Assembly (NCBI GenBank): GCA_020891255.1
Contig: BQFW01000005.1
Coordinates: 248,001 to 312,000, forward strand
Direction: 5' to 3'
DNA length: 64,000 nt
Origin: Entomortierella parvispora E1425
Taxonomy: Eukaryota > Fungi > Mortierellomycota
In this document: positions 5,221 to 59,886 of the stretch, one piece after another
Layout of the letters: each line of letters begins with the position of its first letter
How positions within the stretch are numbered: the first letter of the stretch is position 1
Program-made: the position numbers and the translations under genes
The notes under the pieces: model-generated
What the model was told of the DNA's origin: nothing
Seen by the model: only the letters and a program-made list of their open reading frames with translations
Databases searched by the model: none

Positions 5221-7609
5221 ATGGCGACCAGCCCATCCACGACGTTGCCAGACAACTCTGGGACTGATCACGACCTTACTTCGGTTGCATCCAGGATGTC
5301 CAGCTTGTCCCTCCAGGCCGTAGACCGACCACTGTCCACATATTCGTCTCCAGACACCACCATTTGGGATGATGACATGCCTTCTCCCCTACCGCCTATA
5401 TCTGTAGACAGAGACGTTCGTCTTCAGGCGGCATGACCTCCTCAAGACTTACCTCTAGAGTTCCATCCAGTCAACCAGACAGCAAAGAACGAGCCTCCAA
5501 GCGCCTCTACAGTGGCACGAACGGATGTAGGTTAGTGGAGACGCCTCAGCAGAAAGAGACTCACCCTGCTACCTCCTCCACCGGAATGATGAGCAACCTT
5601 GCCTTTGACTTCCAATCGACGATTCAGTTCAAGGAGACTCCTCTGCCAGCGAAGCTGCCAGTGTCTATGAACAGGGATGTACCATCATGGAGCAGACCCC
5701 CTGAATCGCAAGCGGATGCAGACGCCATCTATCGAGGTTCACCTCCCAGCTTTCAGCAGTCAACTCCCACTCAGCCAGCTGTGCAGCCAGGGAGGCCAAT
5801 CTCGGATACGCCACCATCCAAGTCTGTCAACAGGGAGATACCACAGGAGCCCAGGCCCCCAGAAGATCCGGCTGGAGCAGGGGCTAGTCTTCGAGTTGAT
5901 CGAGATACACTTCTCAACTTCAAGCAGTCAACTCCAGTCAAGAGCACGCAGCCAGCAGTCCATCAGCAGCAGCCTGAGAAACCAATTGGATTTGGATCTG
6001 TTCATCATGTTAATCGGGATACACCTCTTGATCTCCGTTCAGCCACCGAGAGACCCACTGTTGCGTCTACACCTCTAGTCCCACCGTTGCCACAAGCAAA
6101 TGTGGATAGAGTCAAGAAGACGCAGCAGAAAGAGTCTCTAGGTCATCCCATTCTGCGAAAGGATAATGATAACCAGGACGCTCCTCCGGGGGACCAGGAT
6201 CGCGACCTCCTCCTTGACTTTAAACCTGCGAACCAGGTCAGCGGCGATCAACCAACAGTGACGATGGGTCGCAGGCCTCCAAACGACCCGGAGGGGGCTG
6301 GGCCTATTCTTCGAGTCGATCGAGACACACTGTTCGACTTCCAGTCGACAAATGCCGCCAGGATTCCGCCAGCGCCTCCGGCTCCACCGATCTCCATCCA
6401 AGCGAAGCGGGAGGAGTGGGCTCCCCCACCACCGCCACCAAGCCCAATGAGGGTTGATCGGGACAGACCACTTCATCTACAATCAGCGAACGGGGCCCGG
6501 CACGGTTGTCAGTCTCCAGCGGTTCCACCGATCTCGGCTCAGGCAGAGAATACAGTAAGTTCCATCCACCCCCGCCGGCGTCGATGAAGGTCGATCGAAA
6601 TAAACCTCTAGAGTTCCGTTCAGCAAGTCAGGCGAGGGAGACTCAACCTCCAGTTCCTCCATTGACGAATGCGAATCCAGTTGAGACTCCAAAGCCAAAG
6701 CCCCCAGTGACGCCAATATCGGAGGCGGGAGCGGGAGAAACCAAGGAATCAGGAAGGGGTACTCCACCGTCAATGTATGACGATGGAGAAATGCCACCAG
6801 ACCTTTATTCATCTCAAAGATCTGAACCTCGGCCATTTGTATTTAGAGGCTATCCGTCCCCTACATTCGGCTCGGCCCCATCTCCGGCGCTGGTGGATCG
6901 GGATAGACCCCTTGACTTTCGCCCTGCTAGAGGCACTGGACCTCAGTCATCTGCATCCAGCGGTTTCTCTGCACCAACACAGCAGTCGGGAACACATGGC
7001 TCGGCCCCATCTTCGGCATTTGTCGATCGAGATAGGCCTCTCAACTTTCGTCCCTTTGGTCACCCCACCTCTCCAATCACTCCACTGACGCCGTCGATAA
7101 GTACCACTGCACATCCTTCTGCAAGACCAGTTACTCCAACCAGCCCTTCCAATGCTTGTACTCCTGTAGGAGTAGAACCTCAACCCAGCTATCACCTTGC
7201 TCATTATCAATCCCCCTATCAGCAACCGGTAGGACCGATACAAGGACAATATCCCCAGCATCATCGCCCCCCTGACGGACAAGGACACCCTACAACCGTC
7301 TATTATCCAGCTCCAGTTGCTCCTCCACCAGCAAGTTCAGGTCCCCAGCCTACCTATTATCCATTGCCGCCTGCCTCACAATGGCCCAGTCGGAATGTGT
7401 TTCCTCCTCCAGGGCCAAGTTTACACACTAGTCATCTATACCAACCTAACTCTTCGCCTTGGAACGTCCACCCGCCAGCGCTGGTGGTAGGAGGTGTGGC
7501 TCCTCAACGGTCTGAAGCACCGGTACCACCTCTTCCTCCCATTAGATCTGGAGTCATACCATCACCTTCTGCCTATGTGCCCACAACACAATACAAAGGC
7601 AGGTCTTGA
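5221..7609 (+). pseudogene. Pro-rich protein with about 12 (V)DRD(T/R)PL(D/E/N)F-type repeats, split over three ORFs; pseudogene or unusually spliced gene
   Basis: ORFs 5221-5436, 5433-6587 and 6506-7609 all carry the motif. In-frame TGA at 5434-5436, after which the same frame still reads QDLPLEFHPVNQ. Frame changes near 5530 and near 6545. Confidence 0.6.
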
Positions 7610-54676: not shown

Positions 54677-54707
<31 letters not shown>

Positions 54708-54800
54708 TAAATAGCGCGCAGAGTTGGTTATTTTCTTGTTTTTTTCTTTTCCGCTTCCTCGATCTTTCTCTTCTTCATCCCCATTCCTCCCCTTCTTATC

Positions 54801-56489
54801 ATGTCCCTCGAATCCGTTACTTACGGACTGGCGATTACCACCATCGTCCTCTTCGGACTGGGTGCTCTTTACATGGCCCGCGCCCGCCAACGTGTCCAGC
54901 AAGATGACACCGAGTTCTTCTTGACTGCTCGTCACTCTGTCCCCGAGAGCACCATCGCTTGGTCCTTTTACGCTTCTGGTGTCGGTGCATGGTAATGATT
55001 ACATCTAGCCACATTGTGTAATGTGGTAGAAATTTACTCCTTTGTGCTTCTTGTCTCTAACCGCCGTGGCGTCCTTCCATTTATCTCCGTCAGGGTTGTC
55101 TTTTCTATGCCAGCCTATGTTGTCTCTGCAGGAATTGTCGGTCTGGTTGCGTACGCCATCTCCTGTGGTATCCCCATCATCATTGTGGCCTATGTTGGTG
55201 CCGTCCTCCACCGCAAATACCCCGGAGTGTTGTCGCTTGGTGATTTCGTGCAATGGCGCTTTGGCACCATTCCCACGATCATTGTGACTTTGGTCATGTT
55301 GTTGAATATGTTTATCGCTCTCTGTGCCGAATATACCTCTATTGGAAACCTCATGGGGCTCGTCATTGGAGGTTCTCGTCTGCCTATCGTCCTCTGTGTC
55401 GCCGTTGTTACCTCTATCTACACCGCTGCAGGAGGTCTTTATGTCTCGATTTTGACGGACGTCGCCCAAGGCATCTTTGGTATCGGATTGTTGATCATCA
55501 TGGCAGTTTACGTTGCAGTCACCTATCGTCCTGCCGATCTGCCCACTCCTCTTCCCGATGGCCTGGGACCTAACTACTGGGGCTGGGCTGCCATCGCAGC
55601 GATGCCCATCTCGATGACATGTGCTACCTTCTTTTCTGAGGCCCCTTGGCAGCGTATCTGGGCCTCTGCTGACGAGCGTGCCTTGAAGCGTGGATCTTAC
55701 TGGGGAGCCCTGGGACTGATCATTGTTTGCTTCTTATACGGATTCGGTGGATTCTTGTCCATCTGGGGCGGATTCCCTCAGACCTCTACCGATGGATCGA
55801 CCGCCTTCTTTGATCTCCTCAATGCTGGCAAGTCGAAGGCTCCTGCTTGGATCATGGTCCTTGCTGCCTTGTCGACTGTGGCCATGAACGAAGGTTGCGT
55901 GGATTCACTCCAGAACGCTATTGTCGACACTTTGGCCTCCCGCTTTTTCCGTGGAAAGTCTGTCTGGTACCCTCGTGTCTTGGTCTTCTTGATCAACATC
56001 CCTATTGTGTTTGTCTCGCTCAAGGGTTACAACATTATTATCCTCTTCTTGATTGGAAACTTGGTCTGCACCATTTGCACAGTTCCCTTGTTGCTGGGAT
56101 TGGTCGACCGTCTGGAGGGCTATGTCACTGCTTGGTCCTTTGTCTTTGGAATGATCATGGGATTCTTTTCGATTGTCGTCTTTGGATATGTCAAGATGGG
56201 CTCTATGGCTGCGGGTATGCAGTACACCTTTGTTGATGCATATGACTGGCCCTCGTTTGTGCTGCCCATCGTCTTTTCGTTCATTGGCGTCTTTATGGCC
56301 GTTGGAGTGGAGGGTCTGATCCGAAAGTCCCTTGGGTTGGCATACCCTGTTCCTCTGGATTTCCCCCCTGAGGCTCGCATGATCCACGAGACTGAGACTA
56401 AGGAGGGCAGCGTCAGCACCCTCGGAGAGGCCGAATACCATGCAGGCAAACAGGACGTTTTCGAGGAGACCATCGAGCAGACGAACTAA
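54801..56489 (+). CDS. Sodium:solute symporter (SSF), DUR31/NCU01977-like; probable thiamine or thiamine-precursor transporter, 2 exons
   Basis: EFFLTARHSV...WSFYASGVGAW|VVFSMPAY, TSIYTAAGGLYVSILTDVAQG, FFSEAPWQRIWAS; about 13 hydrophobic segments; TPP aptamer immediately downstream. Confidence 0.88.
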
Positions 56490-56891
56490 GTGGATTACTT
56501 GACCAGATCCAACTCTTTGATACGCACGAGGATATGGAAGGAGAAAGGAGAACGACAAGTCGACAGGAGCCCAGGAAATAACCAGCGCAAGACCCGGTAG
56601 ACGTTCGGTCAAGTATCCCTCGAGTTGAGGAGGACGACGAAGAGAGTACCCGACTTTTACCCTCAAGCCTCACCTCTCGATGGGGTTTTTTTCTTTCTTT
56701 CTTTTTCTTTTAACTTTCTTTTCAATTGCTTCAATTGTCGGGGTTCTGGTTCTTTGTTCACTTTTCCATCTCGTGTCCATTTATTTTTTTATTTATTTGC
56801 ATCTTGAACATCATAATCATCATCACTTTTCTTTTGTTGTTATTTATTTTCATTTTAATTCTTTTTATTTCTCTTTTGCATTCGGATTCAT

Positions 56892-57024
56892 GAGTAGCGC
56901 AAGGGGTGCCCGGACGACATTTTTCGCTTTTCTTTTCATTTTGAAAAAGAGTCGTCTGAGCTGAGATCATACCCTTATTACCAGATCAGGATAACGCCTG
57001 CGATGGGAAAACATTGCGCTCCTC
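56892..57024 (+). ncRNA. TPP (thiamine pyrophosphate) riboswitch aptamer in the 3' region of the SSF transporter gene
   Basis: P1 AGCGCAA(56896-902)/TTGCGCT(57014-20); P2 AAGGG/CCCTT; P3 GCCCGGACGAC/GTCGTCTGAGC with a TTTTTC/GAAAAA extension; conserved CTGAGA and ATACCC; P4 CCA/TGG; P5 CAGG/CCTG with loop ATAACG; conserved GATC and GCG. Confidence 0.93.
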
Positions 57025-57134
57025 GTTTCGAAGACGAATTGCATTTTTAATCACCCTTTTTTTTGGTACCCTTCTTGTCGGCGAATGTCATGGGACACGG
57101 AGGACTGTTGAATGTCATGCATGAGTTGTTCCAG

Positions 57135-57147
57135 ACTAATTTGATAG
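57135..57147 (+). promoter_or_regulatory. Candidate branch point and 3' splice site downstream of the aptamer
   Basis: actaatttgatag: CTAAT branch consensus followed by TAG at 57145-57147. Alternative AGs end at 57134 and 57164. Confidence 0.5.
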
Positions 57148-58089
57148 GCAACGCATTTCGCTAGTTTGTCAATTGCCACCACTTTTCTTCTTTTTTGTTA
57201 TTGTTTACGTTACTTTTTTCGTACCTCGGAAGTCAACATCCATCTTCTGAGGGCGAAGGACGCGAGAGAGTTGATTGTTACCTTATTTTTTTCACTTTTT
57301 TGGTTTGAAGGGGGGGAGGGGTTGCATGAGGGCCAAAAACATTTACCTGCATGGTCAAGTGTCACCCAATGGAGAGGAAGATGTTCCTGTGCCTCCCCCC
57401 ACTGTTTTCTTGTTCACACTGATTATTTTGGATAAAGCCCAAGGATTCCGGCAAGAGAATCGAGTCTGTCGATAACGAGCAACCGGGCCCACCAGGATCA
57501 AGCAAGAAAACGGACAAAGAAGGAGACAGGGGGAAAAAGAGAGGGACGGGAGATTCTTTTTTGCCAACAAAATAAAGTCGGAAAGGACAAAACAAATCAG
57601 AAGAGACAGTGCAAGATTGCCAAGAGACAGAGTCGACCAAACAAACAATTTGAGTGCGAGAGGGAGGGTGGTAGGTGCGGATCAAAATCACGAATCTCCG
57701 GAAAAGATGCTCGGAAAGCAGGCAGCTCAGGGGCAAGAGAAGGAAGCCAATGTCCATTCTGGGCATTGCGAAGCAACAGGGGTCCGCCGGAGCGAATCGC
57801 GCAGGTCATACATACCAAACACACCAAGAAAAGAGAAAAGAAAAGGACGCACTAGTACTCTGCCACGATGCGACATAAATTCCCTTTTTGAGCCAAACAC
57901 ACACCTGACACGCCCTCACCCCGTGCAATGAAATGCTTCCTCCCAAAGGGCACTACAAAGGTCGCTTCGCCTCTCTTTTCTTTTCTTCTTCTTCTTCTTC
58001 TTCTTCTTCTCATTCCATTACCCACCACTCTCATTCACTCTCTCCACTCTGCATTAGAAACGCTTCATCGCCAGCATTCTCTCTGCCTC

Positions 58090-59886
58090 ATGAACAAGGC
58101 CCTAGATCCGCTCCGGCGGCTGGTGGTCCAGTTTAACGCTCGCTTTGCCCAGGCTCAGTCCAGGGCACTTGCGTCCACAAACATCCCACCGGCCCCACCC
58201 CACCTCCACCATGCTCCTTCTGCGCCCACTACCGTGCACCACCCTTCCACTGCTGCTCCCCTCAACAAGCTGGGCAGCGGCCTCCCCATCTTTGGCCAGT
58301 TCCAGGCCAAGGTCGCCGTCCCCTACCACAAGGACGGGCCCCTGCTGCTCGCCCATCTGAATCAAAAGCTCAACTTCTTGGCTCGCAACGTCCTGCTGCC
58401 AGAGCCCGCTCGAGTCGCTGCTGTCAACTACGCCTGTCGATCTGCAGGTCGCCCCCAGATGGCGTCGCTGTTGTCCAGGGGATCCCAGCGGATGATGCAC
58501 CACCAGCCCTTGAAGTTTGCTGTTCCCCACGGATTCGTCCGCAACGTCGGTCTGTCGTCCACCCGCGGCTTCTGCTCGTCTGTGCAACCAGCCGTGAACG
58601 GTCCTGCCAGGATGCTGGCCCAGATGTACGCCAAGCCCCTAGGCATCCTTCCCAACCATGCCCAGAAATTGTCCCCTTCTGACGGTGATCGTAAGCGTTC
58701 AGCGGTGGCCAGGAAGAGACAGTCTTCCTCTCGTAAGGCCCACAAGGCCCAGAGCAAGGTCGGCCGCCTCTCTTCCTCCACCATCCGCTCCTTCCTCGCG
58801 CGCGCCACCTTGGTTGAGCAGCAGCACCAGTTCTTGGACTTGTGCGGCACTAACAAGGCCGTCTCGACTGCCACCGCCATCTCGTTGGCCAAGGTCGTCG
58901 GCAAGACCTGCTCAGACTTGAACTTGCTCCCCAAGCTCAAGGCATCGGAATACTGCCCCACCAACGTCGACATGTGCTTCTTGCTGGATGCTTCGCCTCT
59001 TTGGCATTTGGATACAATGGTCTCGGCTTTGCACACGGATTCGCTGCGCGCCCCCAAGCAACTGAATGGTTCCTTCATCGAGGACTTGCTCCAGATCACC
59101 AACGCCCAGTACCAGCATTTCTTGGAGGTCTCTGCGATCCTTCAAAAGTTGGTCCAGTGTCCTGAGGCACGCGAGATTTCGCTGGAGGGCTATGAGCTTC
59201 GAGTGCACTTTTTGGGAACGACTTTGTTTGACATGACCCAATTCTTGAGAGAACTTTCGATCGACCCCAAGAGTCCTCATTTTGACTTGGACGAGTATTA
59301 TGCAGACATGGAATTGATGCCGGAGCAGTACTTCCCTCAGGCGTCCGTCAACCAGTACTATGCACCTTCGCTTTCGGACAATGAGACCTGGGATGAATGC
59401 AGCAGCCTGCAAAGCTCCCTCATGATGTATGGCGAATCGGAACGATGTTCGAGCGTGGCTAGCTTTGCGACCATGGATGCTCTGCCGGAACCTTGGGAGG
59501 GCGCTATTGGACTCACCTCTGCCGCCGCAACTGAGGACACCTCGTCTGACCTTGAAGTGGAAACTGATGCGATCACTGAAGACGAAGAGGAAGAAGAGAC
59601 TCCACAGGACATCGTGGAGACTGTTGAGGCTCCTATGGTAATCGCCGTTGACTTTACGCCTGCAGAGGATCCCGCTCTGGTCTGGACTGCCCCTGCAGAG
59701 ACTGACAAGGAGTCCATGTCCATGATCCAAGAGTCGACCCGCAACCTGAACCAGATGTCGAGTCATATCTTGACGACTGAGGTCACCGAGGGGTACTTTG
59801 ACGACATTCGCGGATTTTTGGAAAGTCTTGACCGCCATAACACGGATCTCTTTTCTGGCGCCATGATATCTCCTTCCGCTCTGTAA
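58090..59886 (+). CDS. Intronless hypothetical protein with basic N-terminus, central globular region and acidic C-terminus
   Basis: Long ORF, likely start MNKALDPL at 58090. The NVGLSSTRGFCSS motif recalls an uncharacterised fungal family (from memory only). Confidence 0.7.
   Translation: MNKALDPLRRLVVQFNARFAQAQSRALASTNIPPAPPHLHHAPSAPTTVHHPSTAAPLNKLGSGLPIFGQFQAKVAVPYHKDGPLLLAHLNQKLNFLARNVLLPEPARVAAVNYACRSAGRPQMASLLSRGSQRMMHHQPLKFAVPHGFVRNVGLSSTRGFCSSVQPAVNGPARMLAQMYAKPLGILPNHAQKLSPSDGDRKRSAVARKRQSSSRKAHKAQSKVGRLSSSTIRSFLARATLVEQQHQFLDLCGTNKAVSTATAISLAKVVGKTCSDLNLLPKLKASEYCPTNVDMCFLLDASPLWHLDTMVSALHTDSLRAPKQLNGSFIEDLLQITNAQYQHFLEVSAILQKLVQCPEAREISLEGYELRVHFLGTTLFDMTQFLRELSIDPKSPHFDLDEYYADMELMPEQYFPQASVNQYYAPSLSDNETWDECSSLQSSLMMYGESERCSSVASFATMDALPEPWEGAIGLTSAAATEDTSSDLEVETDAITEDEEEEETPQDIVETVEAPMVIAVDFTPAEDPALVWTAPAETDKESMSMIQESTRNLNQMSSHILTTEVTEGYFDDIRGFLESLDRHNTDLFSGAMISPSAL

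Follow-up and report, generated by a model that had tools for sequence, protein, structure and literature searches.

To our knowledge, thiamine pyrophosphate (TPP) riboswitches are the only riboswitch class established in eukaryotes. In plants, a TPP riboswitch is said to reside in the 3′ untranslated region (UTR) of THIC, a description credited to Wachter and colleagues in 2007. The element described here is a TPP aptamer that lies 3′ of the stop codon of EMPS_03589, a symporter gene of the fungus Entomortierella parvispora E1425 (Mortierellomycota). Gene and aptamer are located in a 64,000-nt stretch of contig BQFW01000005.1 (assembly GCA_020891255.1, positions 248,001 to 312,000, forward strand). 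This whole stretch is referred to as the window, and positions are counted from its first nucleotide.

Surveys of fungal TPP riboswitches describe aptamers in 5′ UTRs and internal introns that act through alternative splicing (PMC5882874, PMC5997356, PMC3597705). A survey of medically relevant fungi reports 5′-UTR placement in Mucoromycota (PMC11683625). The initial annotation of the window, made from the sequence alone, set this locus apart from published fungal TPP riboswitches in 5′ or internal introns, and that contrast agrees with the literature (PMC5882874, PMC5997356, PMC3597705).

The Dur31/NCU01977 genes of the Ascomycota (PMC3597705, PMC5997356) are one described system to which the locus can be compared. 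In Candida parapsilosis, Dur31 is a 525-amino-acid thiamine transporter under TPP-riboswitch splicing control, and the riboswitch intron breaks the reading frame after approximately 58 codons (PMC5997356). In Neurospora crassa NCU01977, long-range α–α′ pairing with the P1 3′ shoulder has been shown (PMC3597705). McRose et al. placed NCU01977 and 113 fungal homologues in the SSSQ group (PMC4260697). The window shares with these genes a sodium:solute symporter (SSS) of approximately 525 amino acids, the TPP ligand class, a long P3 and the absence of P3a. It also shares a coding-region intron after approximately 60 codons and, close to a sequence resembling a 5′ splice site, a candidate element with the potential to pair with the P1 3′ shoulder. 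The position of the aptamer is different. In ascomycetes, a coding intron close to the gene's 5′ end holds the aptamer, whereas in the Mortierellaceae the coding intron (72–155 nt) is empty and the aptamer is 52–530 nt past the stop codon. The proteins are approximately 28% identical (see the Lipomyces comparison below).

The locus resembles plant THIC in having a 3′-UTR aptamer on the same strand as the gene and 3′ of a 5′-splice-site-like sequence. The plant gene encodes hydroxymethylpyrimidine phosphate (HMP-P) synthase, whereas the gene here encodes a transporter. Unlike the plant system, none of 12 fungal loci has an AATAAA between the stop codon and the aptamer, a weak negative because fungal signals are degenerate. 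There is also no consistent pairing between the donor-like site and P4/P5, and no spliced form was seen. The plant-like 3′-UTR arrangement proposed in the initial annotation is supported for the position of the aptamer, and a THIC-like mechanism stays hypothetical, with no 3′-UTR splice joint seen, no AATAAA upstream of the aptamer and inconsistent pairing.

Algal SSSP, SSSF and SSUA-like genes (PMC4260697) and diatom THIC/SSSP genes are similar in carrying a TPP aptamer in the 3′ UTR of a PF00474 symporter gene. They differ from the present locus in lineage, and the fungal 3′ UTR has a conserved donor-like motif and a hairpin upstream of the aptamer. In the fungus Postia placenta, a TPP match was annotated in the 3′ UTR of eIF5B, with a structure that was not validated by the authors (Mukherjee et al. 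2018, PMC5882874). This case is likewise a fungal aptamer annotated in a 3′ UTR. It is isolated and in a gene unrelated to thiamine, whereas the Mortierellaceae arrangement is family-wide, occurs in a second phylum and lies beside a thiamine-type transporter. A literature search for TPP riboswitches together with Mortierella or Chytridiomycota returned no report, which does not exclude a prior description. TPP aptamers in 3′ UTRs are known from plants and algae, and the family-conserved fungal case is probably new.

Structure and conservation of the aptamer

The gene and the aptamer have the following positions.

54801–56489, + strand: SSS-family (PF00474) symporter gene EMPS_03589, 528 amino acids, with exons 54801–54991 and 55094–56489
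56892–57026, + strand: TPP aptamer, identified by an RF00059 match, its own covariance model and covariation

The aptamer begins 403 nt past the TAA stop codon (56487–56489) on the same strand as the symporter, in agreement with the distance of approximately 400 nt from the stop ending at 56489 given in the initial annotation. An extended and unusually long P1 (approximately 13 bp) is formed by 56890–56902 and 57014–57026. The 5′ strand of P2, GGGGTGC, is at 56903–56909. It is followed by a long P3 (approximately 56910–56958), and P4/P5 occupy 56980–57006. The motifs CTGAGA (56961–56966), ATACCC (56969–56974), GATC (56984–56987) and GCG (57000–57002) are all present. The motifs, P1, P2, P4, P5 and the long P3 were all found where they had been annotated.

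In a search with relaxed filters, RF00059 matches the aptamer with 42.4 bits over model positions 1–105 (E 4.7e-7 in 500 nt). Across the whole 64-kb window, on both strands, the E-value is 6.1e-5 and this is the sole Rfam match with E <0.005. The match anticipated in the initial annotation is therefore significant but does not reach the RF00059 gathering score of 54.3, and an Rfam scan at the gathering threshold returns no match. The score is below the threshold because the aptamer has a 42-nt insert in P3 and lacks P3a, both of which are usual among eukaryotic TPP aptamers. Homologous aptamers at nine other loci score 40–55.5 bits with RF00059, and one orthologue (55.5) is above the gathering score.

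A covariance model built from nine of the sequences recovers four left-out loci at 93–123 bits and finds no further match in 179 kb. In the 13-sequence alignment, 91.2% of cells are paired, compared with 36–48% when the partner is slid by 1–3 columns. Compensatory changes are present in 12 of the 23 helix pairs, and the observed values were not attained in any of 500 shuffles. The ligand-contacting motifs (CUGAGA in J3-2, ACCC of P2, the GCG bulge and GGGAA) are invariant in all 13 sequences. Judged from this comparative evidence, the aptamer is real and under purifying selection.

These results bear on the possibility that the aptamer is a decaying relic without present function, which is extremely improbable. 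A relic would be compatible with a score under the Rfam gathering score. It would also be compatible with a preprint that reports predicted diatom 3′-UTR aptamers (THIC/SSSP) to be unresponsive to thiamine (bioRxiv 10.1101/2022.01.04.474978). Decay does not account for the invariance of every ligand-contacting motif, nor for compensatory changes that preserve the helices between genera and in two phyla, with flanking sequence that cannot be aligned. For the window aptamer, TPP binding and a response to thiamine are instead predicted.

The symporter and its relatives

The gene originates from Entomortierella parvispora, and the translation of exon 2 is identical (100%) to the NCBI protein EMPS_03589. 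A Pfam search matches the sodium:solute symporter domain PF00474 in this protein. The gene has a single intron of 102 nt (54992–55093), solved exactly against the protein, which follows codon 64. This intron contains no aptamer, and the sole aptamer in the 64 kb is 3′ of the stop codon. The empty intron may be the counterpart of the riboswitch intron of Dikarya.

EMPS_03589 aligns end to end with its chytrid homologue, through a conserved YP(V/L)P motif beyond which the tails are short and variable. A 532-amino-acid Lipomyces protein named as a 'urea transporter' also aligns end to end (28% identity over 505 residues, E 6e-54). The closest relatives in word-based and exhaustive profile searches are from Mortierellomycota, Chytridiomycota, Blastocladiomycota, Zoopagomycota, streptophyte algae and alveolates. 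Among the top 150 representatives of the exhaustive search, as far as these are named, the Lipomyces protein is the single member from Dikarya. The neighbours of the symporter in a protein atlas are Ascomycota 'urea transporter' clusters of 523–529 amino acids.

Based on distant similarity to the Lipomyces protein, it is plausible to call the symporter Dur31-like. The DUR31-like assignment of the initial annotation agrees with full-length PF00474 homology and a length of approximately 525 amino acids but not with the ascomycete placement of the aptamer in a 5′ coding intron. By analogy with published Dur31 and SSSQ work, and given the riboswitch, a role as importer of thiamine or a thiamine precursor is plausible.

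Linkage of the aptamer to the symporter gene

The loci compared consist of the DNA around symporter homologues and one soil metagenome contig that was found through the aptamer core. An aptamer was detected at 13 loci. Twelve of the genes are from Mortierellaceae, with paralogues, a tandem pair and the metagenome contig among them, and one is from a chytrid. In all 13, the aptamer is on the coding strand and 52–530 nt past the symporter stop codon. Besides the window, the Mortierellaceae loci are from Dissophora, two tandem copies in Haplosporangium, the E. parvispora paralogue EMPS_05732, Lobosporangium, Actinomortierella wolfii, Mortierella alpina, E. beljakovae, Linnemannia elongata, Mortierella sp. 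AM989 and the soil metagenome contig (L013). In the chytrid Cladochytrium replicatum, the aptamer is 164 nt past the symporter stop codon, on the same strand.

The gene on the other side of the aptamer is not constant. In the main orthologue group, it is a gene without a Pfam match on the same strand. Downstream of the paralogue EMPS_05732 there is a clathrin light chain gene, and downstream of the first Haplosporangium tandem copy there is the second symporter copy. The neighbour is convergent both in A. wolfii, where it is an aldehyde dehydrogenase gene, and in C. replicatum, where it is a small open reading frame. The place of the aptamer is thus fixed relative to the symporter while its other neighbour changes among five kinds, and the aptamer therefore belongs with the symporter. 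As judged from these sequence comparisons, its association with the 3′ side of this symporter family holds across the Mortierellaceae and in one chytrid. For the homologues in Spizellomyces and Neoconidiobolus, no aptamer was found within 4 kb. A metagenome scan with the aptamer core returned one genomic contig and zero transcript contigs.

Individual loci have features of their own. The A. wolfii aptamer (L005:6276–6514) is split by a P3 insert of approximately 150 nt. Rfam covers only its 3′ two-thirds (6419–6508), and the P1/P2 5′ strand GTAGCGTATGGGGTGTCC is approximately 130 nt upstream of the Rfam start. In Haplosporangium sp. (L002:3038–8036), each of the two tandem symporter copies has its own aptamer. 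The reading frame of the first copy runs on through a conserved stretch that precedes the donor-like motif described below, and its aptamer is 52 nt past the annotated stop codon. The 3′ UTR of C. replicatum contains an intron-like sequence of approximately 73 nt (GTGAGT...CTAAC...TTTAG, L006:5677–5749) that begins 17 nt past the stop codon and lies between it and the aptamer.

Transcripts and the mRNA 3′ end

Two features 3′ of the aptamer delimit the transcription unit.

57431–57576, + strand: poly(A)-signal-like GATAAAG (57431) and AATAAA (57571), the probable 3′ end region of the symporter mRNA
58036–59886, + strand: next gene, with its ATG at 58091; in the RNA-like run X10 of a relative, a contig with adapter letters starts at 58036; outside the riboswitch unit

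Transcripts were examined in three public runs labelled as this species (X4, X5 and X10), and their contigs are only approximately 88% identical to the window. This identity applies to the coding region, and the 3′-UTR flanks are unalignable; the runs are probably from another species or a deeply divergent strain. Two of the runs are DNA-like and keep intron 1, and X10 is RNA-like. A 1973-nt contig of X10 skips exactly 54991–55092 (GT..AG), with intron 1 spliced out. The coding contig of X10 is co-linear with the DNA contig for 372 nt beyond 56339, to the equivalent of approximately 56777, and the dominant form is therefore unspliced at the donor-like site. A second X10 contig (635 nt) spans 56881–57043 together with 145 nt before and 327 nt after. 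On DNA-contig coordinates, the two RNA contigs overlap by approximately 30 nt, which is the word length of the assembler minus one, and they are probably neighbours in one transcript graph. The aptamer is transcribed in the relative, apparently as a continuation of the symporter mRNA.

In 11 of 12 loci, an AATAAA is present 160–630 nt past the aptamer, often in the form GGAAATAAAG with a pyrimidine run plus CAG ahead of it. These downstream poly(A) signals fit the 327 nt by which the X10 contig extends past the aptamer. Taken together, the signals and the extension place the aptamer inside a 3′ UTR of approximately 0.9–1.1 kb. The 3′-UTR location claimed in the initial annotation is borne out by the linkage at 13 loci, the complete protein upstream, the RNA contigs of the relative and the poly(A) signals downstream.

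The same data were considered with respect to a separate transcript, in which the aptamer would be the 5′ leader of the next gene (ATG 58091) or part of a noncoding RNA that starts from the T-rich tract before it. In most orthologous loci, the same gene without a Pfam match does follow on the same strand, but a different neighbour follows in the paralogue, the tandem pair, A. wolfii and the chytrid. The aptamer contig is apart from the coding contig and approximately three times deeper, yet the two overlap by approximately k-1 on DNA-contig coordinates, as expected of adjoining parts of one assembly graph. T/C-rich tracts also precede the symporter's own start. Against a separate transcript, the downstream transcript of the relative begins at approximately 58036 with adapter letters, an AATAAA is present 3′ of the aptamer and ahead of the next gene, and the relative shares nothing with the window between 57043 and 58036. 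A separate transcript is accordingly regarded as quite improbable, and a location within the symporter mRNA is preferred.

Other elements of the 3′ UTR

Between the stop codon and the aptamer, and shortly after the aptamer, the following elements were recognized.

56584–56591, + strand: AGCGCAAG, identical in sequence to the P1 5′ strand and located 22 nt ahead of the donor-like GT
56610–56618, + strand: donor-like motif CAA/GTATCC with GT at 56613–56614 (the slash marks the candidate splice site), 124 nt past the stop codon and within a conserved block
56615–56687, + strand: hairpin directly 3′ of the donor-like motif, with arms 56615–56631 and 56667–56687
56688–56890, + strand: T-rich tract from the hairpin to the aptamer, with a 33-nt island (56723–56755) kept in the approximately 88%-identical relative
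57136–57147, + strand: branch-point-like CTAAT followed by AG, a weak candidate acceptor of a 3′-UTR intron, from sequence only

An all-versus-all blastn comparison of the regions between stop codon and aptamer returns a single shared block, CAGGTAAACTCGACTTGA. The block is 54–188 nt past the stop codon in Dissophora, E. beljakovae, L. elongata, Mortierella sp. AM989, the paralogue, Lobosporangium and the metagenome contig. Relatives have CAG/GTAAAC or CAG/GTAACC as the orthologous motif. In Lobosporangium, it is CAG/GTAACT and the site is within a small stem, by reading of the sequence. The donor-like core is complementary to the 5′ end of U1 small nuclear RNA. Real introns of the symporter family (n=11) begin with GTAAGT, GTATGT or GTGAGT types and have a CTAAC or CTAAT branch.

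The hairpin has a duplex energy of -20.8 kcal/mol, a value reached by none of 200 shuffles, and its 5′ arm starts at +3 to +5 of the donor-like site. Equivalent hairpins are present in the paralogue (Epar2), L. elongata, E. beljakovae, L013 and the locus labelled Dorn, and they are significant in the first four.

With respect to acceptors, L. elongata contains TCACTAAC(N9)CAG/G at a similar distance from the aptamer, and a pyrimidine-CAG is found just ahead of the poly(A) signal in several species. Two other candidates were rejected. The 3′ arm of the hairpin lacks the AG in E. beljakovae and Mortierella sp. AM989. Within the aptamer (CTAAY...CCAG, J2-4/P4), the distance from branch to AG is only approximately 7 nt and the branch motif is variable.

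The conserved block raises the question of whether the annotated stop codon is the end of the protein, or whether the aptamer is in a last coding intron, in the manner of NCU01977, with a further exon downstream. A short stretch 5′ of the donor-like motif can be translated in some species as S-N-Y-G-T-F, with changes at third codon positions, and in the locus labelled HapA it is in frame with the coding region. However, its spacing to the motif is 18, 19 or 21 nt, so that the indels are not multiples of three, and in-frame stop codons precede it in most loci. As a coding mini-exon the stretch was rejected on account of these frame-breaking indels and preceding stops, and it is read as conservation at the RNA level. 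The RNA contig is co-linear with the DNA from the coding region past the stop codon, the chytrid and Lipomyces homologues match the protein over its whole length, and no conserved sequence follows the aptamer. A further exon is very improbable, and the annotated stop codon is retained as the end of the protein.

Possible pairing between the aptamer and the donor-like site

In a search for duplexes between the donor-like site and the aptamer, five loci have the P1/P2 5′ strand as the best partner, and the remaining loci have P4/P5 or different parts of the aptamer. Donor–aptamer pairing of the plant or NMT1 type is not supported by these sequence comparisons.

A different pairing is suggested by the copy of the P1 5′ strand. 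The AGCGCAAG copy could pair with the P1 3′ strand at 57014–57020 and is a candidate α element in the sense of NCU01977. In the loci labelled Ltra, Ebel, HapB and Epar2, each of which has a differing P1 3′ shoulder, the best or near-best complement to the locus's own shoulder starts 25–29 nt before the donor-like site. The interval from -40 to -11 relative to the donor-like site has a low rank in most loci, with a p-value of approximately 0.01 in a combined rank test. Pairing of an element near the donor-like site with the P1 3′ shoulder is a lead that is suggestive at best.

Proposed mechanism

The explanation that best joins these results, and that is considered probable, is a functional TPP-binding aptamer that is located in the 0.9–1.1 kb (approximately) 3′ UTR of a Dur31-type symporter mRNA and acts in cis. 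High TPP would lower expression of the transporter through altered processing of the 3′ UTR. TPP would stabilize the aptamer and its long P1. In the TPP-free state, the P1 3′ strand would pair with the look-alike of the P1 5′ strand just 5′ of the donor-like site. This pairing, which follows the scheme demonstrated for N. crassa NCU01977, would alter use of the donor-like CAG/GTAAAC (CAA/GTATCC in the window) and would thereby decide whether a 3′-UTR intron that holds the aptamer is removed or retained, and hence the fate of the mRNA.

An exon junction more than 50–55 nt past the stop codon is beyond the usual limit for nonsense-mediated decay. The donor-like site is 54–188 nt past the stop codon, and the exon junction of the spliced mRNA would therefore be beyond this limit. 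The unspliced mRNA would have a structured 3′ UTR of approximately 1 kb. Either form could be the repressed one.

Several observations weigh against this explanation. The tandem copy HapB carries GA rather than GT in the donor-like motif. At +5, the motif has A, whereas each of the 11 real introns of the family has G, or T then G, there. No acceptor is conserved across loci. The RNA contigs of the relative contain no spliced form of the 3′ UTR, though contigs drop minor forms. The best duplexes between donor-like site and aptamer are inconsistent among species and rank at 0.02–0.47 of background windows. In no single locus is the best ungapped complement to the P1 3′ strand stronger than in shuffles, and the enrichment at -40 to -11 is post hoc, the interval having been picked after the data were seen, among related sequences. 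In X10, the depth of the aptamer contig is 172 and that of the coding contig is 61, which a simple 3′ UTR does not predict. The excess at 56881–57043 could stem from 3′ bias, from a stable 3′ fragment or from a second transcript.

The main alternative is a 3′-UTR riboswitch without splicing, in which TPP-dependent folding of the long P1 and the aptamer directly alters decay, 3′-end formation or export of the mRNA. In that case, motif and hairpin would form a 3′-UTR element with no relation to the aptamer, for example a binding or processing site. This alternative accommodates RNA contigs that show the unspliced form only, the lack of a conserved acceptor and the weak donor consensus, and the deeper aptamer contig could be a protected 3′ fragment. 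It also has a parallel in the 3′-UTR aptamers on single-exon algal genes of McRose et al. (PMC4260697), for which action without splicing must be supposed. It is nevertheless held to be rather doubtful. A U1-complementary CAGGTAA core that is kept 54–188 nt past the stop codon, amid a diverged 3′ UTR, is hard to explain otherwise than by splicing, and all experimentally dissected fungal and plant TPP riboswitches work through splicing (PMC3597705, PMC5997356).

A broader proposal builds on the splicing-based explanation and is put forward tentatively. Early-diverging fungi (Mortierellomycota and some Chytridiomycota) may place TPP riboswitches in 3′ UTRs, with a 3′-UTR intron that holds the aptamer and pairing to a P1 look-alike. 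This would be a third design of eukaryotic expression platform, possibly ancestral to the 5′-intron form of Dikarya.

Neighbouring features of the window

The next gene (58091–59886) has no Pfam match. In the relative, its transcript start is approximately 1 kb 3′ of the aptamer, and no conservation with the window is found after 57043 until 58036. Its RNA contig in the relative is much deeper than that of the symporter (1630 compared with 61). A (CTT)n microsatellite is present at 57985–58010, just 5′ of the transcript start. In most Mortierellaceae, a gene of this kind, without a Pfam match and approximately 570–650 amino acids in length, is 3′ of the symporter and has the conserved start MxxALDPLRRLVVQ. 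Orthologues are at L001:7583–9298, L004:6973–8802, L009:7044–8774, L010:5603–7408 and L012:5881–7683, and in L013.

On the other side of the symporter, a run of approximately 37 A is located at 54679–54715, just 5′ of the T/C-rich promoter region of the gene. This run is behind a spurious, weak RNase P match (RF01577, 40.6 bits compared with a gathering score of 100).

Implications

Annotation pipelines that tie an aptamer to the next downstream gene would mislabel these loci. The Mortierellaceae offer a tractable fungal system for the study of riboswitch action in 3′ UTRs, and Mortierella alpina and Linnemannia elongata can each be grown in culture and transformed. The partnership between symporter and aptamer would be older than the position of the sensor. 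For an unnamed transporter family of Mortierellomycota, Chytridiomycota and Zoopagomycota, the aptamer points to a likely thiamine-related role.

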